NCBI GenBank assembly: GCA_047495785.1
Contig: JBLDXI010000057.1
Location: forward strand, 171,583-235,582
Direction of reading: 5' to 3'
Length of the DNA stretch: 64,000 bases
Source: Lepidodermella squamata
Taxonomy: Eukaryota; Animalia; Gastrotricha
Numbering within the stretch: the first letter of the stretch is position 1; each line of letters begins with the position of its first letter. Shown piece after piece: positions 30,130-64,000 of this stretch. The notes beneath the pieces are model-generated. The model ran no database searches. It saw only the letters and a program-made list of their open reading frames with translations, and had not been told where the DNA came from. Made by a program: the position numbers and the translations under genes.

Positions 30130-30171
30130 GGGTTAGGGTTAGGGTTAGGGTTAGGGTTAGGGTTAGGGTTA
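30130..30171 (+). repeat. Telomeric tract (GGGTTA)7
   Basis: Read directly. It merges into the internal telomere-like tract of family A. Confidence 0.97.
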
Positions 30172-31121
30172 GTAGGGTTAGTACTACGGTCCTCCGGTTC
30201 AATATATTGCAAATTTTCAAGCAAAACTTTCCACCCCGTGACCAAGTTGTCACGGAGGTTCGTGCTGGTCATTGAGGCGCAGGCTTGACGCCACGCGTTG
30301 ACGAATTCTTCACGCGGTTCGCCGAGGTTGATGCCGCGGGCCTTGCGGATGACCGTAACCGAGCTGCCTTGACTGCAGACGCTGTTGAAGGCGCGAGCGG
30401 TGTAGAGCGGTAGCGAGTCGGGGTCGCAGTAACGGAACGCTTGCGACGCGTCCTTGTAGGCAAAGTAGGCTGCACCTGCGTGAGCCCAGCCGGAGCGGAG
30501 GCGAAGCGAGGTGACGGTGGCGGCGGCGAAACTGTCGCGTTCTGCAACGACTTTCGGGTCGACGAGCGAGTCTGTGGGAAAGAATTTGTTCATGCCATTA
30601 ATAAAATTTCTTTCATGTGGCGTGTAGCCGCCGCTGTTAACAGCAGTGCTAATGCGCGCCCGAATAATAAAATGATTAATAAATGATGCAAGCTTGGCCT
30701 GATATCGCTCGAGGATATCGTGACGGTGCTGTTGCTCGAGCCGTTGACGACGGTTAGAGGGCGGTGGTGACGCGTTCCTTGGAGCACGATTGCTCGGAGC
30801 GGGCGGACGCTGCTCTCGCCATGAGCGGTCGCGATAGCGGTCTTCTCGGTCTTGAGGACGGTCTTCGCGGTAGTAATGGCGGTCGTCGCGGTAGCGATGA
30901 CGGTCTTCGCCACGGTGACGGTGTTGTTGTCGATGTTGATCGTCTTGTTCGCGGTAACGCGATTGAGACGGCGTCGGTGGTTGACGACGGCGACCGGCTG
31001 TTGATGTCGAATTGTGGTAGACATAACGGAAGCCGCCAATGTAAGCGCGCTTCGCCGGATCGTTGTTGGCCGTGGTGAACCCGTTGTAATTATTTGCAAC
31101 AAAGCGATTGTGATTTGACAT
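30160..31121 (-). pseudogene. 3'-truncated copy of family A ORF1 running into telomeric repeats
   Basis: Matches the first ~320 aa of ORF 33826-35931, then reads (NP)n from CCCTAA repeats. Confidence 0.9.
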
Positions 31122-31143
31122 TTATCAAGATTTATTTATACTT

Positions 31144-31177
31144 TCAACTAACGCGTTTCAAATTTCATCAGAGTTGA
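31144..31177 (-). ncRNA. Minimal type I hammerhead ribozyme (family A, copy 1)
   Basis: UCAACU-CUGAUGA-AAUUU-GAAA-CGCG-UU/AGUUGA: 6-bp stem I, intact core, vestigial stem II, palindromic stem III (AACGCGUU). Confidence 0.85.
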
Positions 31178-32153
31178 GTGTGAAAACAGAACGATTCGTC
31201 GTTGTATTTAACATAGCGAAGCTGCGCCTACTTGGTCCAGGTAAGATCGTGTTAGGCGCAGCCTCTTAGCGCAACAGCTGTACATTAATTAACAATAATC
31301 TGTGTGTAACGAGGCGTTGACTAGGTGTGGCGCGGCAGATGGCGAAAACAGGTGTGCGCCGAGGTGCTGTAATCCCTAATCCCTAATCCCTCGCAGGTGC
31401 TCGGGTGATCACGAGCGGATTAACAGAAGGGAGCGAGAACCGATAATCATTAAGCTGTAGTTAAGTCCTGATGACTGCCGGCGTTGAGAACTAGTCGGAA
31501 AGAGGTTTGACGGACGTAACAAATCGATAGCGAAGAAAAAATCCGGCGTGACCATGGGGCGCAAAAGTAGGCAATTTATCAAAAACTTGTAGAAGTGCAA
31601 CAGTTGCAGCCGAGGTGTGTTTCTAGATGTAAGAGACCACGGAGAGCTCAAAAATCGAGGTCCCAGACTCACACGAGCTGGCGTTTGGAAGTAAACATCA
31701 AAATACAAAAATATTTTCGGTTTTTCCCGGATTTCGTGAAAACTAAGTCGAAAATCAAAATTCGAAGATCGGAGCAAAAAACTACATCATATGACACATC
31801 CAAATATGTTAATCATTAAAACGTGGTCATACTTTCATATTAGTGAGCTCGCAGTTTTTGCCGTTTTACGCGAAAACGGTGAGGATTGGCGATCAAACAA
31901 CAGTAACGTGACCCATATGTTTAGAACAGACCACGCGGAATCGATTGGAACTATTTCCCGGGAGAGTAGGTGTCACGGTTAACGAGATAATCGACTTTTA
32001 CGAAAATAAATTTTGGTAAAGTGAGCGGAAGGGCGCGTAAGAGCGCACAAAATTAATTTCAGTGACTATTCACACGTTTCGCAACATTACAACATTATTA
32101 CAGATCAATTGAGCGAAAGATTTTTGAGACGAAAAACTTTGAGCCAAAGCACG

Positions 32154-33893
32154 CTAACAGTCTTTAGTGCGGCAGAGCTGCTTGACCAGCGACGGGCCGA
32201 GGTGTGTGACGACGCGATGCCGGTGCCGTTTGGCGACGTCGAGTAGTGGCTGCAGACCGCGAACGAACTTGGTTTCGTGCTCCGGCCGCCAGTCACGATC
32301 GACCGGTCGCGAGTCAGCACGGTGTCGTAGAAACGGCCAGTCGAGGCCGGCGCAGCCGTCGACAACGCTGCGGCAGATTGCGAAGACGTCCGCGTCGTGA
32401 TAGCCGTACTTGCTGGCGGAGGCGGCGAGACTGAACACGGCCGAGGCCAGGTCCTGTGTGTTGTTACAAATTCGAACAAAATTAAGTAAACGACCAGAAA
32501 TAGCTGCACGTAAGGTGGAAAGAGGGTGATTAGAATCTGCGTGCAATAAAGGCAGCGCATTCATAGGCTTAAAGTAAACCCCTGTTCGAATTGAACCGTC
32601 TTCAAACTTCTGCATTCGCACGTCGAGCACGTTTGCACAGTCGTTGCTGATGTCGATTTCCAGTTTGATGCGAGGGTGCAGCGCGCTGTAGCCATTGCCC
32701 AGGTTGACGGCGGCTTCGTGGCTGGTAGCGACCGCGAAAATGTCGTCTCGGTAGCGTTTAAACAGTAGGAGGCCCTCGGAGCGGGCGACGAGGTCGCGTT
32801 CGAGAACGAAGAGAAAGGCGTCGGCGACGACGGGCGCGGTGTTTGACCCCATCGGGATGCCGTGCACTTGCCGATAACGAGCGCCTGCAAACAGAAAAAT
32901 ATTGAATTTAAGCGTGATTTTTAATATTTCGACAACAAGATGGCGTTCTGCTTGAGACCCGATACTGTTCTCGCGCAGTAGTAGCTCGATGGCGGCGATG
33001 CCTTCGTCGATCGGGACGTTGGTGTAGAGGTCGCTGACGTCGGCGGTGAAGAATGTAGCGTCGAGACCGCTTGTGTCGATTGACCGTACCGCTGATAACA
33101 GGTCGATAGTAGAGATCGCACACGTCGTCATGAAGTAATTCAGCGGTTTACAGAAGGCGGCGGCGACCTTGTCTGCGGCTGCGAGCGCGGTACCTAGGCA
33201 GTCGACGATCGGGCGAATCTTCGGTAGACCATCGACGTCGTTCGGTTTATGCATTTTCGGTAAGAAGTAGATGTACCGGTCACGCGTTGGCACGAGGTCG
33301 AGACCGCGGAGCAGCTTGCGTTGCGCCGCGGTACCTGAGGCGTTGATTCGCTCGACCAGAGACTTCATTGCTTCCAGCCCGGCGGTTGACTCGTCTTCAG
33401 TGGCGTTGACGTAGTTGGCGGTTGACAGATGCTTCGTTGCCATTTGGTTGTAGTCTTCTTTCTTGAGATAGACCATGGCCGAGCCCTTGTCCGACTTCTT
33501 AAAGACGCCGTTGTCGCGGAGCGCCTTGAGTCGTCGCAGCTGCGGGTCGTCGTTGAGCGGGCCGATTGTGAGCGTTCGGGCAGGCTGAGCGTGACGGATG
33601 ACCACTTGGCCGTTGATGCCTATGATAGGCCCTACGAAGCGTTTCGAGAACGGTACCGCTGGGACCGAGACGTCGTAGCGGTGATCGGCCCGCGGTTGGA
33701 CGGTTGCACCTAGAAGATCTGACATAGTTTTTAGTGAGGCAAATTTTTCTTTTTTAGTAAAATTTATAATTTTAAGGCCCCGCTCGAGTGCCTGTTTCTC
33801 GGCGGGCGCCAAACTTCCTGTCAGATCAATGACTGACGGTAGGGAACAGCGGTGAAGGCTGAACGCCGTACCATTCTGGACAAGGCACGACAT
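32154..33893 (-). CDS. Family A Penelope-like reverse transcriptase without GIY-YIG endonuclease
   Basis: YFLPKMHKP, IRPIV, TADVSDLYTNVP, QVHGIPMGS, RYRDDIF, and thumb GVYFKP..SNHP. The ORF stops shortly after the thumb. Confidence 0.93.
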   Translation of the reverse strand: MSCLVQNGTAFSLHRCSLPSVIDLTGSLAPAEKQALERGLKIINFTKKEKFASLKTMSDLLGATVQPRADHRYDVSVPAVPFSKRFVGPIIGINGQVVIRHAQPARTLTIGPLNDDPQLRRLKALRDNGVFKKSDKGSAMVYLKKEDYNQMATKHLSTANYVNATEDESTAGLEAMKSLVERINASGTAAQRKLLRGLDLVPTRDRYIYFLPKMHKPNDVDGLPKIRPIVDCLGTALAAADKVAAAFCKPLNYFMTTCAISTIDLLSAVRSIDTSGLDATFFTADVSDLYTNVPIDEGIAAIELLLRENSIGSQAERHLVVEILKITLKFNIFLFAGARYRQVHGIPMGSNTAPVVADAFLFVLERDLVARSEGLLLFKRYRDDIFAVATSHEAAVNLGNGYSALHPRIKLEIDISNDCANVLDVRMQKFEDGSIRTGVYFKPMNALPLLHADSNHPLSTLRAAISGRLLNFVRICNNTQDLASAVFSLAASASKYGYHDADVFAICRSVVDGCAGLDWPFLRHRADSRPVDRDWRPEHETKFVRGLQPLLDVAKRHRHRVVTHLGPSLVKQLCRTKDC

Positions 33894-35931
33894 GCCCGTC
33901 AGCCCTAGCGACGTTATAAAACGTGATCGCGGCTTCTCGATGCCTCCCTTCCTTGTCGCCGTGCTTTAAGGCGATGTGTTCGCATAGTGCGTTGATCGAA
34001 CCACGGTGAGGTCTGTGAAGACACACGGTGCCGTTCTTCTTTTTCTTGCCGCAGTACCAGAAGTGTTCTAATTCGTTCCATTCGACGCCGATTTCCGGGT
34101 CTTCTTTCTTCGTTTTCTGCCACCATTCGCGTCGGTACAAGGCCGTGATGACTCCGCGTTTTTGAGCGAACGTTTTCGGCGAGACTTGTTGCGCGTTGGT
34201 GTTTGAGCGTTTCGACTGACCGGGCGCGTTGTTGTAAACTTTCGATGCGGACGCGGCGTTTTCACCGTACATCTTCTTCGCGGGTACGGCCTTGGGCTTC
34301 GCTTTCGGAGCGACGGTCGAGATTGCTTGTTGTTTCGCGGTGGGCGGACGAGCTGTAGGCGACGGCTCCTTCTCTTCTTCTTGACGCCTCCGCTTCGACG
34401 ACACTGAAGGCGGAGGCGCGACCGGGTGGGTCACGCGTTGAGAGTTCGGCGTGAGCCCGAAGAAATCCGACGCGACCATGATAACATTTTCTCTAGGAAA
34501 AAGTGGGTTATTATTAATTAAAGCTTCGGCCGCTGTAGCGGCAGCCAGAAGCGCTGTGTCGCTCGCGGTATCGATGACAGGTGACGAGATCTTCCTCGGT
34601 GCGGCGGGCTGAACCGATTGTTCAGAGGCGCGTGTTGTGGTCGGAGTGATCGAATCGGTGTTGTTGTTGTTCGATTCGACGACGATGACGGGTGAGGCGT
34701 TGCGTGCGCTGGCCACGGCTGGCGGTGAGGTGGTAGGCGTGCGCGTTGTCGGAGCCTTGGCGACTGGCGCGGCGATAGGTTCGCTGTTCTTGACGATGGG
34801 TGAGGCGACGGCGGCGGCTGCTGGAGGCGCGGCCTTCGGTGTGACGTCGACGACGGAGATGCCTTCGCCGGTTTCTTCTTCGATCACTTGCATCGGAGAC
34901 GCGGGCTGTGCCGCGGGCGGTGCTTGAACCTCTGTACCCCTGGGAGGTACGCGGACCTGAGAAAGAAAAGGGTTAGGGTTAGTAGGGTTAGTACTACGGT
35001 CCTCCGGTTCAATATATTGCAAATTTTCAAGCAAAACTTTCCACCCCGTGACCAAGTTGTCACGGAGGTTCGTGCTGGTCATTGAGGCGCAGGCTTGACG
35101 CCACGCGTTGACGAATTCTTCACGCGGTTCGCCGAGGTTGATGCCGCGGGCCTTGCGGATGACCGTAACCGAGCTGCCTTGACTGCAGACGCTGTTGAAG
35201 GCGCGAGCGGTGTAGAGCGGTAGCGAGTCGGGGTCGCAGTAACGGAACGCTTGCGACGCGTCCTTGTAGGCAAAGTAGGCTGCACCTGCGTGAGCCCAGC
35301 CGGAGCGGAGGCGAAGCGAGGTGACGGTGGCGGCGGCGAAACTGTCGCGTTCTGCAACGACTTTCGGGTCGACGAGCGAGTCTGTGGGAAAGAATTTGTT
35401 CATGCCATTAATAAAATTTCTTTCATGTGGCGTGTAGCCGCCGCTGTTAACAGCAGTGCTAATGCGCGCCCGAATAATAAAATGATTAATAAATGATGCA
35501 AGCTTGGCCTGATATCGCTCGAGGATATCGTGACGGTGCTGTTGCTCGAGCCGTTGACGACGGTTAGAGGGCGGTGGTGACGCGTTCCTTGGAGCACGAT
35601 TGCTCGGAGCGGGCGGACGCTGCTCTCGCCATGAGCGGTCGCGATAGCGGTCTTCTCGGTCTTGAGGACGGTCTTCGCGGTAGTAATGGCGGTCGTCGCG
35701 GTAGCGATGACGGTCTTCGCCACGGTGACGGTGTTGTTGTCGATGTTGATCGTCTTGTTCGCGGTAACGCGATTGAGACGGCGTCGGTGGTTGACGACGG
35801 CGACCGGCTGTTGATGTCGAATTGTGGTAGACATAACGGAAGCCGCCAATGTAAGCGCGCTTCGCCGGATCGTTGTTGGCCGTGGTGAACCCGTTGTAAT
35901 TATTTGCAACAAAGCGATTGTGATTTGACAT
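33826..35931 (-). CDS. Family A ORF1 (701 aa): R/D-rich N-terminus, helical domain, P/A/T-rich linker, C-terminal C2H2-like zinc finger
   Basis: Continuous ORF containing YCGKKKKNGTVC...LCEHIALKH; overlaps the RT ORF in the +1 frame. Confidence 0.85.
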   Translation of the reverse strand: MSNHNRFVANNYNGFTTANNDPAKRAYIGGFRYVYHNSTSTAGRRRQPPTPSQSRYREQDDQHRQQHRHRGEDRHRYRDDRHYYREDRPQDREDRYRDRSWREQRPPAPSNRAPRNASPPPSNRRQRLEQQHRHDILERYQAKLASFINHFIIRARISTAVNSGGYTPHERNFINGMNKFFPTDSLVDPKVVAERDSFAAATVTSLRLRSGWAHAGAAYFAYKDASQAFRYCDPDSLPLYTARAFNSVCSQGSSVTVIRKARGINLGEPREEFVNAWRQACASMTSTNLRDNLVTGWKVLLENLQYIEPEDRSTNPTNPNPFLSQVRVPPRGTEVQAPPAAQPASPMQVIEEETGEGISVVDVTPKAAPPAAAAVASPIVKNSEPIAAPVAKAPTTRTPTTSPPAVASARNASPVIVVESNNNNTDSITPTTTRASEQSVQPAAPRKISSPVIDTASDTALLAAATAAEALINNNPLFPRENVIMVASDFFGLTPNSQRVTHPVAPPPSVSSKRRRQEEEKEPSPTARPPTAKQQAISTVAPKAKPKAVPAKKMYGENAASASKVYNNAPGQSKRSNTNAQQVSPKTFAQKRGVITALYRREWWQKTKKEDPEIGVEWNELEHFWYCGKKKKNGTVCLHRPHRGSINALCEHIALKHGDKEGRHREAAITFYNVARADGHVVPCPEWYGVQPSPLFPTVSH

Positions 35932-35953
35932 TTATCAAGATTTATTTATACTT

Positions 35954-35987
35954 TCAACTAACGCGTTTCAAATTTCATCAGAGTTGA
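35954..35987 (-). ncRNA. Minimal type I hammerhead ribozyme (family A, copy 2)
   Basis: Same sequence as 31144-31177; ends 22 nt upstream of the ORF1 ATG. Confidence 0.85.
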
Positions 35988-36198
35988 GTGTGAAAACAGA
36001 ACGATTCGTCGTTGTATTTAACATAGCGAAGCTGCGCCTACTTGGTCCAGGTAAGATCGTGTTAGGCGCAGCCTCTTAGCGCAACAGCTGTACATTAATT
36101 AACAATAATCTGTGTGTAACGAGGCGTTGACTAGGTGTGGCGCGGCAGATGGCGAAAACAGGTGTGCGCCGAGGTGCTGTAATCCCTAATCCCTAATC

Positions 36199-36219
36199 GG
36201 GTTAGGGTTAGGGTTAGGG

Positions 36220-36260
<41 letters not shown>

Positions 36261-36285
36261 GGTTAGGGTTAGGGTTGGGTTAGGT
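36199..36285 (+). repeat. Telomeric tract capping A and priming B
   Basis: About 14 TTAGGG units with a few variants. Confidence 0.97.
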
Positions 36286-36289
36286 TAAT

Positions 36290-36331
36290 TACCAGACGGG
36301 AAGCCTAAGCAACCCCGGCATAGAAGCTCTA
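36290..36331 (-). other. Conserved structured element adjacent to the telomere-priming tract (B1)
   Basis: TACCAGACRGGWAGCCTAAGCAACCCCGGCA..RGCTCTA is shared by B, C and D (also at 42463, 47187, 53076, 60594, 62387) while the flanks diverge. Confidence 0.75.
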
Positions 36332-36575
36332 GCAATCCCTTTCACTCTTTTGACGGTAATAAAAACGTTTTGCGTACCTGTCAATCCGTTGATTAGCACC
36401 AGTTGAGATTATTTCAAACAATTTCAATAATTTCCTAAGAAAGAGATTAAATATAATTGAATGTTTGAACATGAATAAGTGTTCTCAAGTCGAGGGTCAC
36501 TGTAGAACCATAAATCCAGGTTCAATCAAAGGAGACCTTGAATGAACCGGGATCATAAATGTAGAATTGAAAATG

Positions 36576-37130
36576 TGGTAGAACCATGTCTTAAGGTTAA
36601 ACCAGAAGGAAGAAGAAGACCTTGGTTGAACCAAAACCATAAAGTTGAGGTTGCAAATACGGGTAGAACCATAACTTAAGGTTGAACCGAAAAGGAAACC
36701 TTAATTGAACCAAAACTATGAAGTTGAGGTTGCAGATATGGGTAGAACCGTAATTTTAAGGTTAAACCGAAAAGGAAACCTTAACTGAACCAGAACTATA
36801 TAGTTAAGGTTGCAAATATGGGTAGAACCATAACTTAAGGTTAAACCGAGAAGGAAACCTTAATTGAACCAAAACTATATAGTTAAGGTTGCAAATATGG
36901 GTAGAACCATAACTTAAGGTTAAACCGAGAAGGAAACCTTAATTGAACCAAAACCATAAAGTTGAGGTTGTAAATATGGGTAAAACCATAATTTAAGGTT
37001 AAACCGAAAAGGAAACCTTAAACTGAACCAGAACTATAAAGTTGAGGTTGCAAATATGGGTAGAACCATAACTTAAGGTTAAACCGAGAAGGAAACCTTA
37101 ATTGAACCAAAACTGTGAAGTTAAGGTTAC
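36576..37130. repeat. About 80-bp tandem repeat (~7 units) in the family B UTR; second copy at about 42749-43303
   Basis: Repeated unit GGTAGAACCATAACTTAAGGTTAAACCGAAAAGGAAACCTTAATTGAACC... Confidence 0.9.
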
Positions 37131-37177
37131 CGTTCCGTTTTTCAAAGGAGAAAAAGGAGAAAAAACCGTAACAATAC

Positions 37178-37319
37178 GCCACCCATGAAGGGGAGCAAAG
37201 AATCAAAGGCCACCCGTATAGGGGAGCGGAAGGAGGCACGCCACCCGTAAAGGGGAGCAACAAAGCAATAGCCACCCATGAAGGGGAGCAATAATTAAAA
37301 GCCACCCGTAAAGGGGAGC
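37178..37319 (-). repeat. Short-hairpin array (GCCACCC-N4-GGGGAGC type) x5, family B
   Basis: About 31-nt periodicity; copy in B2 at +6173. Confidence 0.85.
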
Positions 37320-37420
37320 ATACGGAGAAAGAGCTCAACGTAAAGGTGAGCAAACTGGAAACAACGCCCAGCCGGGTTACCAGACAGTATTGGTAAGAAC
37401 AGGAGGTCAAAAGCACGCAA

Positions 37421-37474
37421 CGCCCATATTAGTCAGACCGGTTTCGCCTGTGGGCAGCAGGCTCGTCAGTGACT
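37421..37474 (-). ncRNA. Type I hammerhead ribozyme with putative loop-II pseudoknot (B1)
   Basis: AGUCA-CUGACGA-GCCUG(CUGCCCA)CAGGC-GAAA-CCGG-UC/UGACU..UGGGCG. Confidence 0.93.
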
Positions 37475-37526
37475 TTGTTGCGAAAATTAAATTTTGCGAA
37501 ATGACGAAAAGTCAGATCTTAAAGCC

Positions 37527-37582
37527 TTTATAAAGGGCTGTTATCTGGACGCCATTTTGAATTTTCAAAATTTGGCGCGAAA
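37527..37582 (-). promoter_or_regulatory. Putative Pol II promoter (E2F-like site, YY1-like site, TATA) upstream of the hammerhead, B1
   Basis: On the - strand: TTTCGCGCCAAA, AAAATGGCG, TTTATAAA. The same order and similar spacing occur in C and D. Confidence 0.6.
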
Positions 37583-38190
37583 GTTTGAGATTTATTTTCC
37601 CAAAATAATGTTATTTCCTGATTGGTAATCATGTGAGGGGTATAACTGGAGTGTTTCACGTAAAAAATGTTCAATTAATTGCCGCATGTTTTTCAAGGTC
37701 GTTGCCATTTGTGGTATCTAGTAAGTTTGCCTAACATGTTTGGTATCAGGTGACCGGTTACGGTTGTGGGTCCAAGTCCAGGAAAACCAAAACCTTGGTT
37801 TTTTGGGTTCTGTTATGGTTTTTATACATTTAAGGTTCATAGGTTTTTGGTGCAGTAACCCAAACTTTAACGTTAAGGTTATGGTTGACGTTATGGTGTT
37901 TTTCAGAATTATGGTTCTAGTTCCGTATCACACCAATTCCCAGTTTACGGTTCGATTTCTCATCTGTAATGTGTCACCAGGGTTGGGTTGCAACCATAAT
38001 TTTCGGTTTTTTTCGGTTGTTGGAGTTGTATGCCGTTTTGCAGGTTCGGTTTTTATGGTTTCACAAGTCGATTTTTTACAAAAGCGATCCACATTTTATT
38101 TCAGAGTTCCTTACCAGGTGGTTTAGAGAAAAACAAAAACACACCATAGCATCGTTACAAACATATTCACTGGAGGTAAGGTTGAGTCAC

Positions 38191-39269
38191 TTAAACTTTT
38201 TTGAGGAAATGGTTGATCAATTCCTCACGGCGTTTGAGCAGCGCCGTTACTTGGTCCATCAGAAGTGGGTGCGTTTCACGGAAATGCGTTGTCAAGCCAT
38301 CACGACGACCGGACCAGGGGGGCGAGCAACCCCTAACGAGGCAGGTCAGTTTCTTTTCACCCGTTTTATCGAAAAGCAATCGATCTTTCCAATCTGGGTC
38401 GTTCTTCAAATGAGCGAAGGCTTTAAGCTCGGCTAGATAGCGCGCCGAGCCTCCGGTAGGGCGTTTCGCAGAGCCCGGGGTGGTTTGAGAGGTCCCCGGC
38501 ACCGATGCCGGTGTTGTCAATGGCCGTTCTATCGAAGTAACAAAAGTAATTTGTGGAAAAGGTGAGAGAACCAGTCACTTACTTGATTTGAGGGCATCGA
38601 GGAATGTATTCTTGCATTCCAACTGTCTTTTCCGCGGTAGTGGCGTGATAATCGGCATACGTTCGACGAGAACCGCTGCCACCATCGGCTGTGTTTGTTC
38701 AGCCATACCGTTGGTTGTTTCGCCCGATGGTTCTTCATCCGCGGTGTCCTTATCGCTCTCGAGCGTAGTCGTAATTTCGACTACCGCAGATTGTTCAGCT
38801 TCGTCTTCCTCGCTGGATGTTTCGAACCCTCCAACATCGTCCGCTTCGCTGATCGTACGTGCTCCAAGGAGGTCGTTGAAGGCACGTTCGGACATGAGGT
38901 CCGCGACATCAGTGTCGGCCAAGTGACCGGCACCTGAAGTTCCAGCCAGATCCATCGGTGTTGCAGGTCGGTTAACCTCCGGTTCCAAAACCGGTGGCGG
39001 AGCAGCAGTGTCCTCAACTCGGCTGGCCGCGGGGGGTCCGCTTTCAACCAGTTGCGTAGCTGTAGACGGGCCAGCGCTGTCATCAAACTGACTAGATGAA
39101 GCCGCATCTATTCCGACGGCAGTTGTTCTGTGTTGGCATGGCAATGGCGGAGGGCGACTAGGGCGGCCAATGGTGACATTTTGAGGTAAGGGACCGCGCC
39201 ATTGATCCGTTCCAGCCCAACGTTTTGGGTCCGTGACCAAGCCTAGGCCAAAGTCCCAGTTGGGCCAAT
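38191..39269 (-). CDS. Family B downstream exons (38583-39269, 38191-38528): acidic disordered region plus C2H2 zinc finger
   Basis: Intron 38529-38582 (GTAAGT..AG) joins the two ORFs in frame; CLVRGC-x13-HFRETH. There is no ATG of its own; the region begins at a TTTTAG acceptor. Confidence 0.82.
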
Positions 39270-39448
39270 CTAAAATTAACTCACGAGTAAAGTGTTTGGG
39301 GAAATGATATGTTGCTGTTTCAATTTATTTACAACCAAAACTTAGGTCACGAGTCATAGTCAAAAGTGTCAATTATCACTTGTATTGTCTTGGAATCCGT
39401 TTGTTGTTGTTGTAGTTGTTGTAGATTAGCCTGTAAACGAACTTATAA

Positions 39449-47092: not shown

Positions 47093-47133
<41 letters not shown>

Positions 47134-48070: not shown

Positions 48071-48124
48071 CTAGTTGCTTAAAACAAAATCCGCTCAAAT
48101 GATGAAAATGTTCGAAAATAAGGC

Positions 48125-53906: not shown

Positions 53907-53959
53907 CGCCCATAGTGCCAGACCGGTTTCGCCTGTGGGCGGCAGGCTCGTCAGTGACT
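53907..53959 (-). ncRNA. Hammerhead ribozyme (C2)
   Basis: Same sequence as in C1. Confidence 0.92.
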
Positions 53960-54693: not shown

Positions 54694-55871
54694 TCAAAAG
54701 TCACCCTTCTTCAGGATCTCAGCGCGGAGACGAAGACGTTCTTCATCCAGTGCTTGGGCCTGGACTAGCTGGTCTTTCTCGTGGTTCTTCAAGAAGTGTC
54801 CAAGTAGACCGTCCGACCTAGTGCAAGTGAACTTGCAGGATCCAATTCGGCAGAGGATGATCGATCCAGGCTTTTTGCCCGGGACCCGGGGAGCTTGCTC
54901 CACCCGTTCCCAGACAAGGGCGCCCTCGTAGTTCTCGCGCAGTTTTTCCCATGCAAGACTTTCGGCGACAGATCTAGCGGAACCTCCCGCAAGTCTCCGA
55001 CCAGAAGTCGTGGGTCCACGGGCTGGAGTGCTGGCGATAGAGAATGAACAACCACCGGTCGATGACGACGAGCGTTCTGTGACAAGGTAAAGTTGAAGTT
55101 AAGGTTGCAATCTCCTTTAAAGAAATATCTTACCTTCCAAAGACGGAAGTGGTCGCTTGCGATTCGCCCTGTTGACTGTAGGCTCCGATGTCGAAGCCAT
55201 GGACACATTGTAGCGGGGTGCTGGCGATGAGGCTGCCGAACTCGTGGCGCTGCTGAATTCCAGTGGGGTTGAGGTTGCGCCTCCTCTCAGAGGTCGTCCG
55301 AACATATCGATATCTATGAAAAGATCGCGATCGAGGCGGACAACACAATCCTTAGTCGACAATCTCGGGTCTGGAGTTCCCAGGGTCGCATCCGGCTGAA
55401 GTGTTGATTCCGAGGATGAGCTTTCACTATCTGAGCGTGAAAGCGCATCACGTGTCTCTTCGGGCAGCTCGTCCGCTGACATTTCAATAGCATCCTCGGT
55501 AGCCGATCTCACCGGAGAATCGGTTATCACGATGACGCCGCCCTGCTCCCGTTCCGGTGCTGCGTTGCTGGTAGCGGTTCCACCGTTATCCTGGTCAGGC
55601 TTGGGATCTGCGTTGACTTGCTCGGTATCGTCGTCCAGCAGGTCAAGGGCTTCCTGGAGGGTAGCCGAGTCCGCGGCAGAGAAGCTACCCAAGCCGCTGA
55701 AAGTAGAAGCGCAAATTTCGGGACCATTGCTCGTCGATGGCAGCTCGAGCCTGTGACCAATGGTGACGGGCGAGGGGCACGGAGCCCTCCAGGCCGACTC
55801 AGGAGCCCAGCGACCGGTATCGTAGGTTGTCCCGAAGTTGAAGAATCTCCAACTCGGTGAAGCCGTGTCAG
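54694..55871 (-). CDS. Family C downstream ZnF exons, copy in C2
   Basis: Duplicate of 48805-49982 at +5889. Confidence 0.75.
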
Positions 55872-56040
55872 CTGGAAATGTTGTTATAGGGTTACGGGTA
55901 TAAAGAAAAGGGTAAAAAGGCAAGTAAATTTGCACCAACTGTTTTATTTCTCACAAATGTTAGTATCATGGTGGATCATCGTCAAATGTCATTGTTCAGG
56001 GCCATAGTTGCGTTGAATGATGTCTTGTGTTGTTGTTTCT

Positions 56041-58718
56041 TTAGCTCTGACCTAGAAATTCAGATTTAGTGAAACGTTTACGATTATTTTTATTAAGACG
56101 AAGGGCCATTTTTCCTTTCCTTCGGATCAGGCTGTATGCGGGTTGAAGTGCTTTAGCATAGTGTAAAACGTGCATTGTCTCGTAATTTTTCTTTTTCTGC
56201 CGGTTGTTGTTGATAAAGGGCCACGTCTTTCCCTCCAATTTTGACAAAGTGCTTTTTGTGACTTTTGAGAGTAGAGTCCAAGAGTACCCCCGTTTAACCA
56301 AGCTGTTGAAAAGGGAGAGCGTTGCATACGCCCAGTCTGAGAACGTTGAGGCAATTCTGCTGAAGCGTAGAATTTGGGATTCAATGACACCACTGAAAAT
56401 GTGCTCTGGGTGCTCTGATCCATAACTGAGCAAGGCGAGGTTATCAGTAGGTTTGAAGTAGACGCCCGTCTCTAGCCTACCCTGTTTTTTATAGATAACC
56501 ATATCCAAGTATTGGCCACTAGTCTGGGAAGAGGACACTTCAAGTTTGATATTTGGGTGCAGTTTTTTGTAATCTTCTTCAAAAGATGATGATCTTTGGT
56601 TGCTGAGAAAAATCGTGAGGAGGTCATCGAGGTAACGGCAACCGAGGGGTGGTGAATAGATAAGCCAGAGTTTTCTTTCCAAGATGAATAACCAGTTATT
56701 AGCCACCCATGGGGAGAGATGGCCCCCCATTGCCAACCCTTGGATCTGTTGGTACCATTTGTTGTTAAATTTCACCCTGCTGGAGCATAGTACGAGGTAA
56801 ATAGCTTTGCATACTAATCTTCGTTCTTCAGGCTCGAAAACTTCATATTCCCGCAGATAAATTGCCACACCGTCCACCGCCTCCTTTAGGGGTATCTGGT
56901 TGTACATATCGCTGATGTCAGCAGTCATGATGACCGCTTCATCCAAGTTCCGACCACTTTCATTCAGTTCCCTGATTTTCTGTAAGACCTCTGTGCTGCT
57001 ATGCACAACAGTTGTGAGGGTATGCCTAGCCCTGCGCAGTTTTTTGTAGAGTGTTTTGTCGGCTTGGGAGGTGTAGGTATTAGTACCATCTGTGATGGGT
57101 CGAACCTTAAGTAGCCCTTCCTCGTCCGGGGCCTTATGGAGTTTCGGGAGAAAGTAAATAAATTTCGAGCGAAGTTTTTGTTGTCTTACAAAGATCCCTT
57201 TCCATTTCCTCAGTGTGCCAGGGGAAATTTGTAGCCATGATGATTTTAATTGAGACAAAGCCTCTCGATATCCCGCGAAGCCGTCATCCTCAACAACTCG
57301 AAAATTAGTTGCGTTGTTCAAAAATTTTTCACCCATACGACAATAGGTGCTCTTGTCTAGAGCTAAAGTGACGTTACCTTTGTCACTTTTAGTGATCCAA
57401 ACGTTCGGTCCTAGTTCTGGGGTTTTATTCTCAAGGCGCGTCATTTCTATGGCGGTCCCGGCGTGTAATTCCCTTCGGGATCTCCTGCTCAGCTGAATGC
57501 CCAGTTCCTTAAATTTTTCCTCCACTTCCTGGAGGGATTTTTGAAGATCTTTTTTGGTCAGTTTGACAAATTGAAATCCCTTCGCTAGGGTTGCCTTAAC
57601 CTCTTCAGATAAACTATTAGTAAGGTCAACAACACCTTTTTTCTCCCAGATCTTGTTTTCCTCGGAAAGATTGAGGGCTGGTTGCCTAGAGCTGTGAATC
57701 GGTAGGTTACCCGGGACGATACAGTTTTCACCGTACAAGGATTTAGTGAATGAAGGGAAATCCTCCATGACGAAGAGGTCGTATATGTGGCAATCTACAA
57801 GGTGTTTCCATAACTTCCCGGGTGCAGAGAAAGTGGAGCGGTGTTTACTACAAGAGACAGTGAACCCGTCTGAATTTTCTGAAGTCAGGCAATTGCTGGG
57901 GTGCCCCGGTTCCCAACGGGCTGAGAAATGCCACACCGAGGGTTCCGTGAAAAGCTGTTTTATAACAACTCCAACCCTACACAAAGTTTTATTACCCATC
58001 AAGTTATCCAAGTATCCCCAAGTAATGTCCTTGATTCCGCTAGGAGTAAAAACAATTTTCCTACCTGAGGCTCCAGAGGCTCCTGCCTGTGGAGCAGTCG
58101 GCAGCCCGCCATTGGTGAGCTCCAAGCCCAGTTTTTCATCAACCAGATGTACCAATGTGCGCAATCTGACTGCTTTGTCGCCTCCAACTCCATTCCAATC
58201 ATGGGCAATGACGGCCTGCGTTGCACGGCAGATCCCGGACTTGTCGAGCGTTTTACCAGCATTGCGGGGTGCGGCAATGAGAGGGAACGGCTGCCAAGTC
58301 ACTGTGAAGTCCGCGCTGATACCAAGCCCTTCTTTATCGGCGGCCCTGTAAGTCGCCGCGAGAGCGTCATCCAGCGCTGCCTTGACCGGAGGTGTCGCAG
58401 ACTCGTAGATCTCCTTGAGACTTAACCATTTCTCAGCTGCTCTGGCGAGGTTAACCGTAATTTTTAATCGTAGCTTCTCTCCCACCAGTTTCAGCGACAG
58501 GTCGACCGCCTCATTGGCCAGTGGTTCGTAATCCAAGATGTCGTTGTCGCAAACGATCTTCGCGATGTCGCGAACTGCCGGGTCAGACAGAGGAGATAGA
58601 CTCAAAACTTTGGTCTTGTAGCCATCCATTTCCTTGAACACGCGGAACGTTTGACGCCAAAAATCATTGAATAGTTGCGTAGCGCGTTCAGTCGAGTCGC
58701 CGCCGGTTCGGTTCGTCG
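56041..58718 (-). pseudogene. Family C RT ORF in C2 lacking its first ~52 codons
   Basis: Matches C1 up to 58718, where the inversion junction removes the ATG. Confidence 0.85.
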
Positions 58719-58721
58719 TCC

Positions 58722-60390
58722 ACGAGCTGCCCGAAGAGACACGTGATGCGCTTTCACGCTCAGATAGTGAAAGCTCATCCTCGGAATCAACACTTCAGCC
58801 GGATGCGACCCTGGGAACTCCAGACCCGAGATTGTCGACTAAGGATTGTGTTGTCCGCCTCGATCGCGATCTTTTCATAGATATCGATATGTTCGGACGA
58901 CCTCTGAGAGGAGGCGCAACCTCAACCCCACTGGAATTCAGCAGCGCCACGAGTTCGGCAGCCTCATCGCCAGCACCCCGCTACAATGTGTCCATGGCTT
59001 CGACATCGGAGCCTACAGTCAACAGGGCGAATCGCAAGCGACCACTTCCGTCTTTGGAAGGTAAGATATTTCTTTAAAGGAGATTGCAACCTTAACTTCA
59101 ACTTTACCTTGTCACAGAACGCTCGTCGTCATCGACCGGTGGTTGTTCATTCTCTATCGCCAGCACTCCAGCCCGTGGACCCACGACTTCTGGTCGGAGA
59201 CTTGCGGGAGGTTCCGCTAGATCTGTCGCCGAAAGTCTTGCATGGGAAAAACTGCGCGAGAACTACGAGGGCGCCCTTGTCTGGGAACGGGTGGAGCAAG
59301 CTCCCCGGGTCCCGGGCAAAAAGCCTGGATCGATCATCCTCTGCCGAATTGGATCCTGCAAGTTCACTTGCACTAGGTCGGACGGTCTACTTGGACACTT
59401 CTTGAAGAACCACGAGAAAGACCAGCTAGTCCAGGCCCAAGCACTGGATGAAGAACGTCTTCGTCTCCGCGCTGAGATCCTGAAGAAGGGTGACTTTTGA
59501 GGTGATTTGTGTCAAGTGAGTGTGAGTGATGAAGTTTCTGAAATAAAACACATTGTTGAACTAATTCACGACTTTTACAACCGTGTGAACCTTAACTCCA
59601 GGCAGAATGAAACAGAAACAAATGGGTCCGAAGATAATCAGAAACCGTAACCTTAAGTAACAACTTAAGGTTGGGCAACCTGAATCAACGTGGAAATTGA
59701 AATCGAACTACAGGACCCTAACCTTAAATCCACTTCAGGAAGGTGGAAATAAACTAACGAATATCTGTAACCTTAAATCCACCTTACGGTGTGAAACCAG
59801 AACTTAAGGTTTTGGGACTTGAACAAATAGCGGAACTGAAAAGAACCTTATCTTATCGAGGACAACCCTAAAACGACTATTCGGCCGGTTATTTAACTTG
59901 TGGTCAGAAGACCGCCAACACTAAGACTAGGCGAACCATAAGTATGAAACCTTAACTCGAACCATAAGTATGAAACCTTAACTCTAAGTCTATCACCTGC
60001 GGCTAAACGACCTTGAAATCACCTGCGGCTAATAAATTCCAAAACGTTTCAACCGTTGGAAATAAGCTAACCACTAGCACTGGGTTATGGAAATAACATC
60101 AGTTTCTAGAAAAATTTTCGCGCCAAAACCCACGTGCCACGATTTTTTCCAAAATGGCGGAAGGGACCGCAGTATAAAAAGCCTTATTTTCGAACATTTT
60201 CATCATTTGAGCGGATTTTGTTTTAAGCAACTAGAGTCACTGACGAGCCTGCCGCCCACAGGCGAAACCGGTCTGGCACTATGGGCGTTGCTTACTATCT
60301 CTCGTATTACATTAGGTTATTACACCGCATACCGCTCCGCAACTAATTTATCGGGTGCTTCCCTCCACGGGTGGCTTAGCTTCCCTCTAA
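58722..60390 (+). mobile_element. Inverted fragment of family C (reverse complement of about 47915-49583)
   Basis: The same ORFs appear on the opposite strand; includes the ZnF exon, promoter block and hammerhead; capped by telomeric repeats. Confidence 0.93.
60235..60287 (+). ncRNA. Hammerhead ribozyme in the inverted C fragment
   Basis: AGTCACTGACGAGCCTGCCGCCCACAGGCGAAACCGGTCTGGCACTATGGGCG. Confidence 0.92.
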
Positions 60391-60582
60391 GGGTTTGGGT
60401 TAGAGTTAGGGTTAGGGTTGGGTTAGGGTTAGGGTTAGGGTTAGGGTTAGGGTTAGGGTTAGGGTTAGGGTTAGGGTTAGGGTTAGGGTTAGGGTTAGGG
60501 TTAGGGTTAGGGTTAGGGTTAGGGTTAGGGTTAGGGTTAGGGTTAGGGTTAGGGTTAGGGTTAGGGTTAGGGTTAGGGTTAG
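60391..60582 (+). repeat. Telomeric tract (about 32 units, first few variant)
   Basis: GGGTTTGGGTTAGAGTTAGGG... followed by regular TTAGGG. Confidence 0.97.
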
Positions 60583-61129
60583 TTTAGGGAAAATACCAGA
60601 CAGGTAGCCTAAGCAACCCCGGCAAGGAGGCTCTAGTGCAGCCCAGCTCAAATAAAATACCGTAATCCTTGATCGAGGCTTAGAGGAGGTTCAGTATTGG
60701 TTGAACTGTGGTATCAACAGTTCCGTAGAGTAGACAAGGGTCTTTCAATGTATGTAAACAGATCATCTCCAGGTTGAGGTTCCCGAACCCTAAGTGGTTC
60801 AAGCTCAGACAAAAATGGCGTGTGCACCATAACTCAGTCAGAGGAACGCCTGTTCAGGATCAGCGCTCCTTTCGTTGGGAAATCGTCACCCGAGAGCACG
60901 CCAGGAAGAGCGACACCCGAACCTTAAGTAACCCTGTAGCATTTCACAGATTACTCCCGGTCCATCCTGCAACCTAAGCCAAGGATGACATTCCAGAAGC
61001 TCAAGTTATTCCAAAAGGTGAACCCTAACTGATGTTGGGCTCGATTTGTGATCTCCCTGTGTCTGAGATCACGATGACCCCCAAGTTATTTAGGGTTGGA
61101 AGGCTTGAAGTCATCCTGCAAGCTGAGAT

Positions 61130-61276
61130 GCCACCCTAGTAGCGGGAAGCGTAATTCCAGATGCCACCCATTGGAGGGAAGCCAACAACGCAATGCCACC
61201 CATTAGAGGGAAGCCAATATCACAATGCCACCCTTGCGGGAAGCCTTTTTCGCCTTGCCACCCGTAAAGGGAAGCA
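61130..61276 (-). repeat. Short-hairpin array x5, family D
   Basis: GCCACCC-N4/7-GGGAAGC; copy at +1793. Confidence 0.85.
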
Positions 61277-61370
61277 CTTGGTAATGTGGTGGAAAAGAGC
61301 AGTACTCGACAATTGCGATTGTCGCATATTCCTAGGAAAAGTAGGAAATAAAGTTATTGATGTCAAGCAA

Positions 61371-61423
61371 CGCCCATAGTGTCAGACCGGTTTCGCCTGT
61401 GGGCAGCAGGCTCATCAGTGACT
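61371..61423 (-). ncRNA. Hammerhead ribozyme (D1)
   Basis: GUCA-CUGAUGA-GCCUG(CUGCCCA)CAGGC-GAAA-CCGG-UC/UGAC..UGGGCG. Confidence 0.93.
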
Positions 61424-61478
61424 CTAGTTGCTTAGACCAAAATCCGCTCGAATGAAGAAAACGCTCCGAAATACGGCC

Positions 61479-61539
61479 TTATATACCGCGATCTCTTCCG
61501 CTATTACAACATACGTGCCACGTGGCTTTGGCGCGAAAA
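61479..61539 (-). promoter_or_regulatory. Putative promoter (E2F-like, E-box, TATA), D1
   Basis: On the - strand: TTTTCGCGCCAAA, CACGTG, TATATAA. Confidence 0.58.
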
Positions 61540-63163
61540 CCCTTTCTGCCATCTGATACAATTCTCGTAATATACGGTTAGAGGTTAGCTTATTTCCAAG
61601 AGTTGACATGCTTTGGAATTAATTAGCCGCAGGTGACAGACTTAGAGTTAAGGTTCCCTACTTGGGGTATTACAAAACCAGGTTTGGCGCTTTAGGGTTA
61701 AGGTTAAGGTTCGCTGTTCTCTGATCATGCTTTTATTAACACAACTTATCTAGTTAGTTAAGGTCATCTCGTTTAGCATTTGGAGAAATTCGATCTGTTG
61801 TTGTTCATCATATCCCTTGAAGTGTCTTATCTCTGTCGCGTGATGAGACATCTAATCTTCGAACTCTAAGGTTCATACACATAGATGACAGGTCAAGAGG
61901 CCCTACCTTTGCTACAACAAGCTTGTAAAATATCTTGTTACCGATACGGGGAAGCTGAAACAGCCGTTGAGTATGGAGTGAATCCATACCAGTCACAATT
62001 CCCTGTGCGTACACAGTCATTACTTCGTTCATGATCGTAATGAGTTTTAAGGTCACACTATGGGTTGTTCCCGGGATTTTGATATCAACAAACCATAAAT
62101 GCAACGCAAACTCAGGCCACTACTTATCCACATATGGATTACATGAGAGAATTGATGACTGCCACTGACTAGCTAGTGTCCTAATTGTTCATCCCATATC
62201 GATCGATATAAATAGGGTAAATACAACCCGAAGAGGCTCCATGTCATCGAAGTAAACCGAGTATGATTGAGTTCTGATGGAGGATTGTTAACGAAACGAC
62301 CATTAAGTTGGTCAGGTATAATAAATGAGCCAAACTGACACCGCACGTACGGCACAAGCAAATTGTTAGGGTTAGTTTAGGGAAAATACCAGACAGGTAG
62401 CCTAAGCAACCCCGGCAAGGAGGCTCTAGTGCAGCCCAGCTCAAATAAAATACCGTAATCCTTGATCGAGGCTTAGAGGAGGTTCAGTATTGGTTGAACT
62501 GTGGTATCAACAGTTCCGTAGAGTAGACAAGGGTCTTTCAATGTATGTAAACAGATCATCTCCAGGTTGAGGTTCCCGAACCCTAAGTGGTTCAAGCTCA
62601 GACAAAAATGGCGTGTGCACCATAACTCAGTCAGAGGAACGCCTGTTCAGGATCAGCGCTCCTTTCGTTGGGAAATCGTCACCCGAGAGCACGCCAGGAA
62701 GAGCGACACCCGAACCTTAAGTAACCCTGTAGCATTTCACAGATTACTCCCGGTCCATCCTGCAACCTAAGCCAAGGATGACATTCCAGAAGCTCAAGTT
62801 ATTCCAAAAGGTGAACCCTAACTGATGTTGGGCTCGATTTGTGATCTCCCTGTGTCTGAGATCACGATGACCCCCAAGTTATTTAGGGTTGGAAGGCTTG
62901 AAGTCATCCTGCAAGCTGAGATGCCACCCTAGTAGCGGGAAGCGTAATTCCAGATGCCACCCATTGGAGGGAAGCCAACAACGCAATGCCACCCATTAGA
63001 GGGAAGCCAATATCACAATGCCACCCTTGCGGGAAGCCTTTTTCGCCTTGCCACCCGTAAAGGGAAGCACTTGGTAATGTGGTGGAAAAGAGCAGTACTC
63101 GACAATTGCGATTGTCGCATATTCCTAGGAAAAGTAGGAAATAAAGTTATTGATGTCAAGCAA

Positions 63164-63216
63164 CGCCCATAGTGTCAGACCGGTTTCGCCTGTGGGCAGC
63201 AGGCTCATCAGTGACT
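63164..63216 (-). ncRNA. Hammerhead ribozyme (D2)
   Basis: Same sequence as in D1. Confidence 0.93.
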
Positions 63217-64000
63217 CTAGTTGCTTAGACCAAAATCCGCTCGAATGAAGAAAACGCTCCGAAATACGGCCTTATATACCGCGATCTCTTCCGCTATTAC
63301 AACATACGTGCCACGTGGCTTTGGCGCGAAAACCCTTTCTGCCATCTGATACAATTCTCGTAATATACGGTTAGAGGTTAGCTTATTTCCAAGAGTTGAC
63401 ATGCTTTGGAATTAATTAGCCGCAGGTGACAGACTTAGAGTTAAGGTTCCCTACTTGGGGTATTACAAAACCAGGTTTGGCGCTTTAGGGTTAAGGTTAA
63501 GGTTCGCTGTTCTCTGATCATGCTTTTATTAACACAACTTATCTAGTTAGTTAAGGTCATCTCGTTTAGCATTTGGAGAAATTCGATCTGTTGTTGTTCA
63601 TCATATCCCTTGAAGTGTCTTATCTCTGTCGCGTGATGAGACATCTAATCTTCGAACTCTAAGGTTCATACACATAGATGACAGGTCAAGAGGCCCTACC
63701 TTTGCTACAACAAGCTTGTAAAATATCTTGTTACCGATACGGGGAAGCTGAAACAGCCGTTGAGTATGGAGTGAATCCATACCAGTCACAATTCCCTGTG
63801 CGTACACAGTCATTACTTCGTTCATGATCGTAATGAGTTTTAAGGTCACACTATGGGTTGTTCCCGGGATTTTGATATCAACAAACCATAAATGCAACGC
63901 AAACTCAGGCCACTACTTATCCACATATGGATTACATGAGAGAATTGATGACTGCCACTGACTAGCTAGTGTCCTAATTGTTCATCCCACTCTCACGAGA

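Follow-up and report, generated by a model that had tools for sequence, protein, structure and literature searches.

The window analysed here, a stretch of 64 kb, carries ordinary genes to the left of position 30129 and, to the right of it, four blocks, termed elements A to D, that self-comparison delimited between tracts of the telomeric repeat TTAGGG and that extend over 34 kb in all. Among the genes on the left, a P4-ATPase has its best solved relatives in flippases of the Drs2/ATP8 type (E 1e-58), and three fragments belong to Cys-loop channels of the nAChR/5-HT3 type (E 5e-11); a search with one of the channel exons returned no match. The joint occurrence of Cys-loop channel and P4-ATPase genes identifies the host as an animal and, taken together with the repeat unit of the tracts, agrees with an initial annotation of this DNA, which had placed it in an animal with TTAGGG telomeres. 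Elements A, B and C encode reverse transcriptases (RTs) of the kind found in Penelope-like elements (PLEs), and the region from 30.1 to 64 kb is, very probably, a subtelomeric array built by endonuclease-deficient PLEs, i.e., the autonomous elements A, B and C and the non-autonomous element D.

Organisation of the array

The tracts and blocks follow one another in this order:

26085-26105, plus strand: short TTAGGG tract, (TTAGGG)3.5, 4 kb proximal to tract 1
30129-30172, plus strand: tract 1, (TTAGGG)7, 44 bp; abuts unique subtelomeric DNA; attachment site of element A
30173-36198, minus strand: element A block; unit of 4810 nt, 1.25 copies
36199-36284, plus strand: tract 2, 86 bp; caps truncated A; attachment site of B
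36285-47058, minus strand: element B block; unit of 6173 nt, 1.75 copies
47059-47182, plus strand: tract 3, 124 bp; caps truncated B; attachment site of C
47183-58718, minus strand: element C block; unit of 5889 nt, 1.96 copies
58722-60394, plus strand: inverted C fragment, 1.67 kb; reverse complement of 53799-55472 (or 47910-49583)
60390-60582, plus strand: tract 4, 193 bp; caps the inverted C fragment; attachment site of D
60583-63989, minus strand: element D block; non-coding unit of 1793 nt, 1.9 copies, 1625/1625 bases identical

A search of the window for (TTAGGG)3 yielded 51 matches, all of them (51/51) on the plus strand, as compared with a chance expectation of 0. With the G-strand on the plus strand, the chromosome end is expected to the right of the array. 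The long open reading frames (ORFs) of elements A-D are all located on the minus strand, as are their hammerhead ribozymes. The elements are thus antisense to the G-strand, which is the orientation expected if the 3' end of the G-strand primed cDNA synthesis. The proposal of the initial annotation that four families are stacked with the same polarity holds for ORFs and ribozymes and fails for the inverted 1.67-kb fragment of C (58722-60394). Its further claim that every block is joined proximally to a TTAGGG tract was borne out by tracts 1-4, and re-capping of the truncated A, B and C blocks is evident from caps that start at 36199, 47059 and 60390, respectively.

Tract length grows toward the presumed end (44, 86, 124 and 193 bp), and none of the four comes close to the length of a typical functional telomere, suggesting that the elements attached to ends that were short or had only just been healed. 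Tract 4 starts with imperfect repeats that are followed by 160 nt of perfect ones. A single extra T (GGGTTTAGGG) is present in tract 2 (~36238) as well as in tract 3 (~47111) and divides them into perfect blocks of 38+32 nt and 50+59 nt, respectively; it may represent the footprint of a seam between the resident telomere and repeats copied from an incoming RNA. The region between the short proximal tract and tract 1 (26106-30128) was considered as a fifth element and rejected, as it contains no ORF and bears no similarity to A-D. This DNA is AT-richer and may constitute an older healed end or an interstitial remnant.

Element A comprises a full unit (30159-34968) and a 5'-truncated upstream copy (34969-36198), which are identical at 1230/1230 bases; the truncation lies 267 nt upstream of the start of ORF1. 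In element B, a full unit (36265-42437) is accompanied by a 5'-truncated copy (42438-47058) cut within the RT ORF, and the copies exhibit 3 real differences in ~4620 nt. Element C consists of a full unit (47165-53053) and a copy lacking 224 nt at its 5' end (53054-58718). These are identical but for one base in a telomere-like stretch, G at 47176 in the proximal and T at 53065 in the internal copy, and since the G is of the telomere type we read it as putatively primer-derived. The near-identity of the copies indicates that they are recent. The inverted C fragment is joined to C via a 3-nt filler, TCC (58719-58721), is capped by tract 4 on its distal side and resembles the outcome of fold-back or template switching, with a loop of ~3.2 kb. 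Element D is devoid of ORFs and has its first 39 nt, its last 70 nt, a hairpin array and the promoter/hammerhead region in common with C, which characterizes it as a non-autonomous derivative of the latter. Its second copy is cut off at 63989, and the last 11 nt of the window (ctctcacgaga, 63990-64000) are unrelated to it. This transition to non-telomeric sequence implies that the array runs on past the window, where neither a terminal tract nor a physical end is visible, and the junction distal to D differs in kind from the other junctions by its lack of a telomeric tract.

Partial tandems are the normal form of PLE insertions (PMC3846280), and each block is an ordinary PLE partial tandem that may have arisen in one event rather than several. 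Alternatively, the chain or the tandem copies could stem mainly from processes at the DNA level, such as unequal crossing-over, break-induced replication or telomere capture between chromosome ends, merely seeded by retrotransposition. The 99.9-100% identity of the tandem copies would fit such an origin, as would the resemblance of the inverted C fragment with its 3-nt filler to a fold-back or end-joining product; moreover, sequence exchange is common among subtelomeres. We nevertheless regard it as very unlikely, because a truncated plus a full copy is the standard product of PLE insertion (PMC3846280, PMC11167929), because four different families are present, each with its own telomere junction and truncation point, and because no block has been duplicated whole along with its tract.

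Reverse transcriptases, ribozymes and other element features

The coding features of elements A, B and C are as follows:

30060-31121, minus strand: telomere-proximal truncated ORF1 of A; runs through the putative priming stretch into telomere repeats (NPNPNP...)
32154-33893, minus strand: RT ORF of A, 579 amino acids, RVT_1; overlaps the end of ORF1 by 68 nt in a different frame
33826-35931, minus strand: ORF1 of A, 701 amino acids; reads across the tandem junction
38191-39240, minus strand: ORF3 of B; exon 1 acidic and Ser-rich, phase-1 intron 38529-38582, exon 2 with a C2H2-like zinc finger
39449-41959, minus strand: RT ORF of B
39449-42341, minus strand: N-terminal-domain/C2H2-like/RT gene of B; exon 1 42030-42341, exon 2 down to 39449
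48805-50049, minus strand: ORF3 of C; two exons, phase-1 intron 49188-49244, C-terminal C2H2-like finger
50152-52986, minus strand: N-terminal-domain/C2H2-like/RT ORF of C, 944 amino acids; truncated second copy 56041-58718

Against Pfam, RVT_1 was the sole match obtained with the proteins of the window. The RTs of B and C are 59% identical, those of A and C ~30%, and the DKG and YFLPK.HK motifs are conserved. An exhaustive HMMER search returned 9609 matches. Among the best 150, a GIY-YIG domain at the C-terminus marks 76 as Penelope-like proteins combining RT and endonuclease, which establishes the RT of A-C as Penelope-type. The top 21 matches are without endonuclease. A GIY-YIG profile was made from the domains of the 76 endonuclease-bearing Penelope-like matches and detected no such domain in any of the six frames of the window, the best hit (E 0.79) residing in the host part. 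In an AlphaFold model of the RT core of C (predicted local distance difference test score, pLDDT, 95.8), three thumb helices and a small beta-alpha-beta unit form the C-terminal end of the protein, and the best matches of the model among solved structures are telomerase RTs (TERT). HMMER, six-frame profile, Pfam and structure model hence agree with the initial annotation, which had described Penelope-type RTs that end after the thumb and possess no GIY-YIG domain; an endonuclease in the RT or elsewhere in the window, which would have spoken against its interpretation, was looked for in the six frames and with Pfam and was not found.

Phylogenetic trees were calculated with FastTree for 158 RT cores and with IQ-TREE for 68; tips were labelled by presence or absence of the endonuclease and did not include named Athena, Coprina, Neptune, Naiad or TERT references. 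The RTs of A-C fall into a clade of 22 members made up of endonuclease-less proteins only (SH-like approximate likelihood ratio test, SH-aLRT, 100; branch length 0.87), all of which stop at the same position after the thumb. It is divided into two subclades, one with B and C and the other with A, and its other members derive from metagenomes or sequencing runs. The sole named relatives, at 27% identity, are two endonuclease-less proteins from the bdelloid Rotaria socialis (P0004 and P0005), which are placed outside the A-C clade on a long branch. A word-indexed protein search with the whole C ORF gave no match, because the index words come from the divergent N-terminus, and the same search with the RT region of C alone gave 5 matches; an exact look-up of the C protein yielded no entry. 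Scanning metagenomes with the RT alignment led to 3 short, distant loci; a scan of viral contigs with the RT retrieved no locus. One relative, P0159, was present on 18 contigs (L005-L010, Joint Genome Institute metagenomes). Upstream of its RT, a row of ORFs of 59-332 amino acids spaced by ~100 nt (L006 695-3516) looks like a putative multi-exon ORF1, and (CCCTAA)~7 concludes the unit, after which the next one begins.

ORF1 of element A was compared with the homologous ORF1 proteins of the relatives L003 and L011 and is composed of a conserved N-terminal domain, a Pro/Ala/Thr-rich middle part and a C-terminal Cys/His motif. Three frame-consistent GT-AG introns of 54-58 nt are predicted, 41972-42029 and 38529-38582 in B and 49188-49244 in C. 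The first of these (58 nt) is specific to B, and its removal yields 944 codons that are colinear with the uninterrupted ORF of C. The phase-1 intron of ORF3 is found at the same place in B and C, where it links the acidic exon to the exon for the C2H2-like finger; the ORF3 proteins of the relatives L001, L002 and L012 end in the same finger. Donor/acceptor-like pairs near 42343-42424 and 52990-53040, at the unit 5' ends and just before the start codon, are putative introns of the 5' untranslated region.

The following non-coding features were recognized:

35954-35987 (second copy 31144-31177), minus strand: hammerhead-like motif of A without helix II, UCAACU CUGAUGA AAUUU GAAAC GC GUU AGUUGA
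L003 2946-2979, L011 509-546 and L017 561-597: helix-II-less motif in relatives of A
37426-37474 (second copy 43599-43647), minus strand: hammerhead of B, type I minimal; helix I 5 bp, helix II 5 bp, helix III ACCGGU
48022-48069 and 53911-53958, minus strand: hammerhead of C; inverted copy 60240-60283 on the plus strand
61375-61422 and 63168-63215, minus strand: hammerhead of D, one per unit
37525-37582 (B), 48125-48190 (C) and 61479-61539 (D), minus strand: promoter-like block with E2F-like TTTCGCGCC and TATA box
37172-37353 (B), 47745-47926 (C) and 61161-61245 (D), minus strand, and L001 5470-5700: hairpin arrays, 3-7 short hairpins just 3' of the hammerhead

Rfam at gathering thresholds gave no match in the window and at permissive thresholds only the hammerhead of D (Hammerhead_3, 21.6 bits, below the cut-off), so the hammerheads were located by motif search and checked by covariation. 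Elements B, C and D contain a minimal type I hammerhead, GUCA-CUGAYGA-GCCUG...CAGGC-GAAAC-CG-GUC-UGAC, and L001 and L016, which are relatives of B and C, contain this motif too, with base changes in its helices I and II that are compensatory. For element A, a canonical hammerhead was proposed and dropped after inspection of the syntenic copies in its relatives, as helix II had wrongly been built from an A/U-rich linker. In the A lineage the CUGAnGA and GAAAC cores are intact and helix II is replaced by 3-6 A/U-rich nucleotides. This motif is found in four elements of the lineage at a syntenic position just 5' of the ORF1 start, with a helix I of 6-9 bp that is wholly different in sequence yet paired; the pattern occurred 5 times in 123.5 kb as compared with 0 times in 200 shuffles. 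A member of a sister lineage, L019 (2090-2118), has an intermediate helix II of 3 bp. All hammerheads examined (10/10) feature a 6-nt palindrome (ACCGGU, ACGCGU or ACUAGU) in place of helix III, the dimer-type arrangement of metazoan and rotifer PLEs (PMC4209133, PMC7761336). Folding of the hammerhead region by minimum free energy did not recover the motif, as is expected when the loop of helix III is 2 nt and pairing is possible only as dimers. The description of the elements as hammerhead-bearing can accordingly be kept for B, C and D, with ribozymes predicted to be of the minimal type I, and has to be narrowed for A to a predicted variant without helix II.

In B, C and D, the region 55-120 nt 5' of the hammerhead contains a TATA box, ~55-60 nt before the ribozyme, together with conserved TTTCGCGCC and CACGTG motifs, the latter, an E-box, being confined to C and D. 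Judged by these motifs, transcripts would start just 5' of the hammerhead and their leader would be cleaved off. The promoter is therefore probably located in the repeat, so that expression would require an upstream partial copy. The hairpin unit of C reads GCUUCCC-loop-GGGUGGC, folding z-scores of the arrays amount to -6.1 for L001 and -2.7 for C, and the arrays could conceivably serve as protein-binding or packaging sites. Element B contains seven additional tandem repeats of 79 nt (36577-37128).

Junctions and proposed mode of attachment

In sense orientation, the 3' ends of all units consist of an imperfect C-strand stretch, i.e., GUACUAACCCUACUAACCCUAACCC in A, a terminus in UAAUUAACCUAACCCAACCCUAA in B and a terminus in UUUUCCCUAAACUAACCCUAA in C and D. 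The features concerned are:

34970-34994, minus strand: reverse-complement telomeric stretch of A, sense GUACUAACCCUACUAACCCUAACCC; inside ORF1, encodes TNPTNPNP in frame
36265-36332 (B), 47165-47234 (C) and 60572-60641 (D), minus strand: 3'-terminal cis-element of ~60 nt plus CCCTAA-like stretch

Such a reverse-complement telomeric stretch is present at 4/4 telomere junctions, where it merges into the proximal tract, and at 4/4 internal tandem junctions. Their presence at internal unit-to-unit junctions, too, shows that the stretches are part of the elements. Immediately 5' of them, B, C and D have retained a conserved element of ~60 nt amid diverged neighbouring sequence. The stretch lies 3' of the hammerhead, at a distance from the cleavage site of ~970 nt in A, ~1150 nt in B, ~850 nt in C and ~800 nt in D. 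The interval is non-coding in B, C and D, where the hairpin arrays are located in it; in element A, the N-terminal domain of ORF1 is encoded there. We take the stretch at 34970-34994 as the putative priming site of A. Its position inside ORF1 means that an intact ORF1 exists only across the tandem junction. ORF1 of L011 likewise contains the 16-mer CCCTACTAACCCTAAC of this stretch in frame, and L003 has a similar stretch. The distal truncations are at an unrelated position in each block, and the TTAGGG caps are joined to them with 0-2 nt of microhomology.

Among the relatives, L005-L010 and L012 possess an imperfect (CCCTAA)~7 located 0.1-0.4 kb 3' of the last ORF and followed by the 5' part of the next unit, and L018 ends in a CCCTAA run inside an ORF. 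These contigs bear on the question of an assembly artefact, in which telomere-containing reads or repeats would have been falsely chained. Assembly is indeed difficult where perfect repeats measure 1.2-5.7 kb and several telomeric tracts are present. The orientation is consistent, though, the partial tandems are of the known PLE kind, the junctions are element-specific and match the internal ones, and the independent contigs of the relatives exhibit the same unit-to-unit junction with a CCCTAA stretch, so that we consider an artefact extremely unlikely.

Endonuclease-less PLEs have been proposed to prime on chromosomal overhangs (PMC8557442, PMC3846280, PMC6431247), and adapted to the array the following sequence of events would apply. 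Transcription from the promoter just upstream of the hammerhead in a partial-tandem repeat would produce an RNA longer than one unit. A telomere that is short or has lost its protection would then anneal by its single-stranded TTAGGG 3' end to the CCCUAA-like stretch in this RNA. With the multi-copy (or circularised) RNA as template, the telomerase-like RT would extend the chromosomal G-strand by more than one unit before dissociating, so that a full copy would lie beside the old telomere, followed distally by a 5'-truncated one. Finally, fresh TTAGGG, presumably added by telomerase, would heal the new end and provide the substrate for the next element. We infer all four of overhang priming, the nature of the template, capping by telomerase and a position of the array at the physical end of the chromosome. 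The notion of the initial annotation that PLEs attached by priming from the telomeric G-strand and that their truncated 5' ends were re-capped is supported and fits every junction.

Several observations weigh against this scheme. The truncation of A is placed exactly inside sense-strand (GGGAUUA)3, i.e., CCCTAAT repeats on the plus strand (36180-36198; internal copy 31370-31391), where CCCTAATCCCTAATC is joined to GGGTTAGGG of the cap; this is not predicted by the model and is unlikely to be a chance match in a unit of 4.8 kb. The single inverted C fragment demonstrates a contribution of DNA repair or template switching to the array. Unequal recombination or the assembler could likewise account for the perfect identity of tandem copies. 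The window stops in non-telomeric sequence after D, without a terminal tract. Lastly, the tracts are short (44-193 bp), and priming at nicks in a longer telomeric array could give the same junctions.

The latter point leads to insertion into an existing long or interstitial TTAGGG array rather than at a free end, in which case no capping by telomerase would be needed and the 3' OH would be provided by nicks, gaps, replication intermediates or an endonuclease acting in trans (cf. SART/TRAS of Bombyx). Each block is bordered on either side by TTAGGG in one and the same orientation, target-primed insertion also yields 5'-truncated copies with microhomology joins, and the physical end is outside the window, all of which is compatible with this possibility. 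On the other hand, an endonuclease is encoded in no frame of the window and is uniformly absent from the relatives in the RT clade, tract 1 has just 44 bp and abuts unique DNA, and tract 4 opens with irregular repeats of the kind seen in de novo addition. We therefore judge insertion into a pre-existing array unlikely and prefer attachment of endonuclease-deficient PLEs to chromosome ends.

Comparison with known systems and flanking DNA

Endonuclease-less PLEs are the closest retroelement relatives of telomerase and the main model for the link between telomerase and retrotransposons. To our knowledge, well-documented cases in animals are essentially limited to bdelloid rotifers, whose telomere repeat and biology are both unusual. 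The mechanism itself has already been described for Athena/Terminons of these rotifers and for Coprina (PMC8557442). Elements A-D resemble Athena/Terminons in the lack of an endonuclease and a telomerase-related RT, in short reverse-complement telomeric repeats at the 3' end and capped 5'-truncated copies, in head-to-tail arrays at chromosome ends (a location that we infer here), in minimal type I hammerheads with a small palindromic helix III (B-D in our case) and in an ORF1 upstream of the RT in another frame, as seen in A (PMC8557442, PMC6431247, PMC4209133). They differ in the repeat of the host, TTAGGG vs. TGTGGG, and in the hammerhead, which is 0.8-1.15 kb 5' of the telomere-complementary stretch instead of directly adjoining it as in Terminons (PMC6431247). 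Moreover, Terminons reach up to 40 kb and carry accessory enzyme ORFs, whereas the units described here measure 1.8-6.2 kb (4.8-6.2 kb for the autonomous ones) and the ORFs of A-C are limited to ORF1, the N-terminal domain, the RT and the zinc-finger ORF3, without accessory enzymes. A further difference to Athena is the hammerhead of the A lineage, which is predicted to lack helix II and in this respect is similar to engineered minizymes and maxizymes.

Coprina elements of fungi, protists and plants are likewise endonuclease-less and telomere-associated in hosts with TTAGGG-type repeats, whereas the host in the present case is an animal. Hammerheads of fungi and protists have a long helix III and are active as monomers (PMC4209133), in contrast to the 6-nt palindrome of the metazoan dimer type in the array.

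In the initial annotation, the gene architecture was not recognized as that of a described element. This first impression is largely accounted for by established PLE biology, namely a promoter and hammerhead in the repeat, internal initiation by the RT on multi-copy RNA (PMC11167929) and retained introns. Canonical Penelope/Poseidon elements, e.g., PAc of Anolis, share with A-D the pseudo-long-terminal-repeat (pseudo-LTR) partial tandem, the promoter and hammerhead in the repeat and, as predicted for B and C, retained introns. In a canonical PLE, reverse transcription begins at an internal AC-rich site that is located 3' of the hammerhead inside an ORF, on unprocessed multi-copy RNA (PMC11167929), and internal initiation of this kind yields partial tandems (PMC11167929, PMC3846280); the internal CCCUAA site of the present elements, which is coding in A, parallels this AC-rich start (PMC11167929). 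Canonical Penelope/Poseidon elements possess GIY-YIG and insert at AT-rich sites genome-wide, whereas no nuclease and only telomere-repeat junctions were seen here.

Oriented head-to-tail retroelement arrays at chromosome ends are also formed by HeT-A/TART/TAHRE and SART/TRAS, and with HeT-A the elements probably have in common that the promoter of one copy depends on the neighbouring copy. Drosophila is devoid of telomerase repeats, and SART/TRAS of Bombyx use a sequence-specific apurinic/apyrimidinic (AP) endonuclease. All of these are non-LTR elements of the long interspersed nuclear element (LINE) type, unlike the Penelope-like, endonuclease-less elements of the array that alternate with canonical repeats. 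Element D is similar to the non-LTR retrozymes of animals in being a non-coding, tandem, hammerhead-bearing derivative with cis-elements in common with an autonomous PLE, a relationship that has been proposed for retrozymes (bioRxiv 10.64898/2026.07.22.740005; PMC7761336). With a unit of 1.8 kb, a telomere-complementary stretch and a position on a telomeric tract it differs from retrozymes, which have 150-300 bp (PMC7761336).

In view of these comparisons, we regard as new the type of host, an animal with TTAGGG repeats, the telomere-attached non-autonomous partner D, the internal or coding position of the putative priming stretch, the helix-II-less hammerhead series and the endonuclease-less clade, which is otherwise known from metagenome or sequencing-run contigs and apparently undescribed. 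Tentatively, A-D and their relatives might be united as an undescribed clade of metazoan PLEs that is separate from Athena and Coprina and builds chromosome ends jointly with telomerase. In three respects its life cycle would depart from that of Terminons. Priming in this clade would take place at an internal CCCUAA ~1 kb 3' of the hammerhead, and within ORF1 in one lineage. Such an internal site would mean that a functional copy can be made only from a template longer than one unit or a circular one (rolling-circle or template-jumping). One lineage could carry a natural hammerhead without helix II that is active only as a dimer, and the clade would support a telomere-targeted non-autonomous partner, element D.

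As a clean example with several families in an animal that has the canonical TTAGGG repeat, the window would offer a second system in which to ask whether such elements merely exploit short telomeres or help to maintain them. It offers testable cis-elements, i.e., the internal priming stretch that is conserved even in a coding region, the 60-nt 3' element and the hairpin arrays, and a hammerhead series that runs from full to helix-II-less. If catalytic, the helix-II-less motif would be the natural equivalent of minizymes and dimeric maxizymes, which are engineered.

In the flanking DNA, the Cys-loop channel genes are represented by:

4714-5535, minus strand: Cys-loop channel gene fragment
15034-16029, minus strand: Cys-loop channel gene fragment
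21352-22305, minus strand: Cys-loop channel gene fragment

The stretches 15575-15935 and 21869-22229 within these fragments are 76% identical, and a pair of inverted tandem arrays with repeats of 20-21 bp (18894-18968 and 19161-19255) is located between the fragments. Together, the channel fragments and the inverted tandem arrays suggest local duplication of a gene family beside the array.

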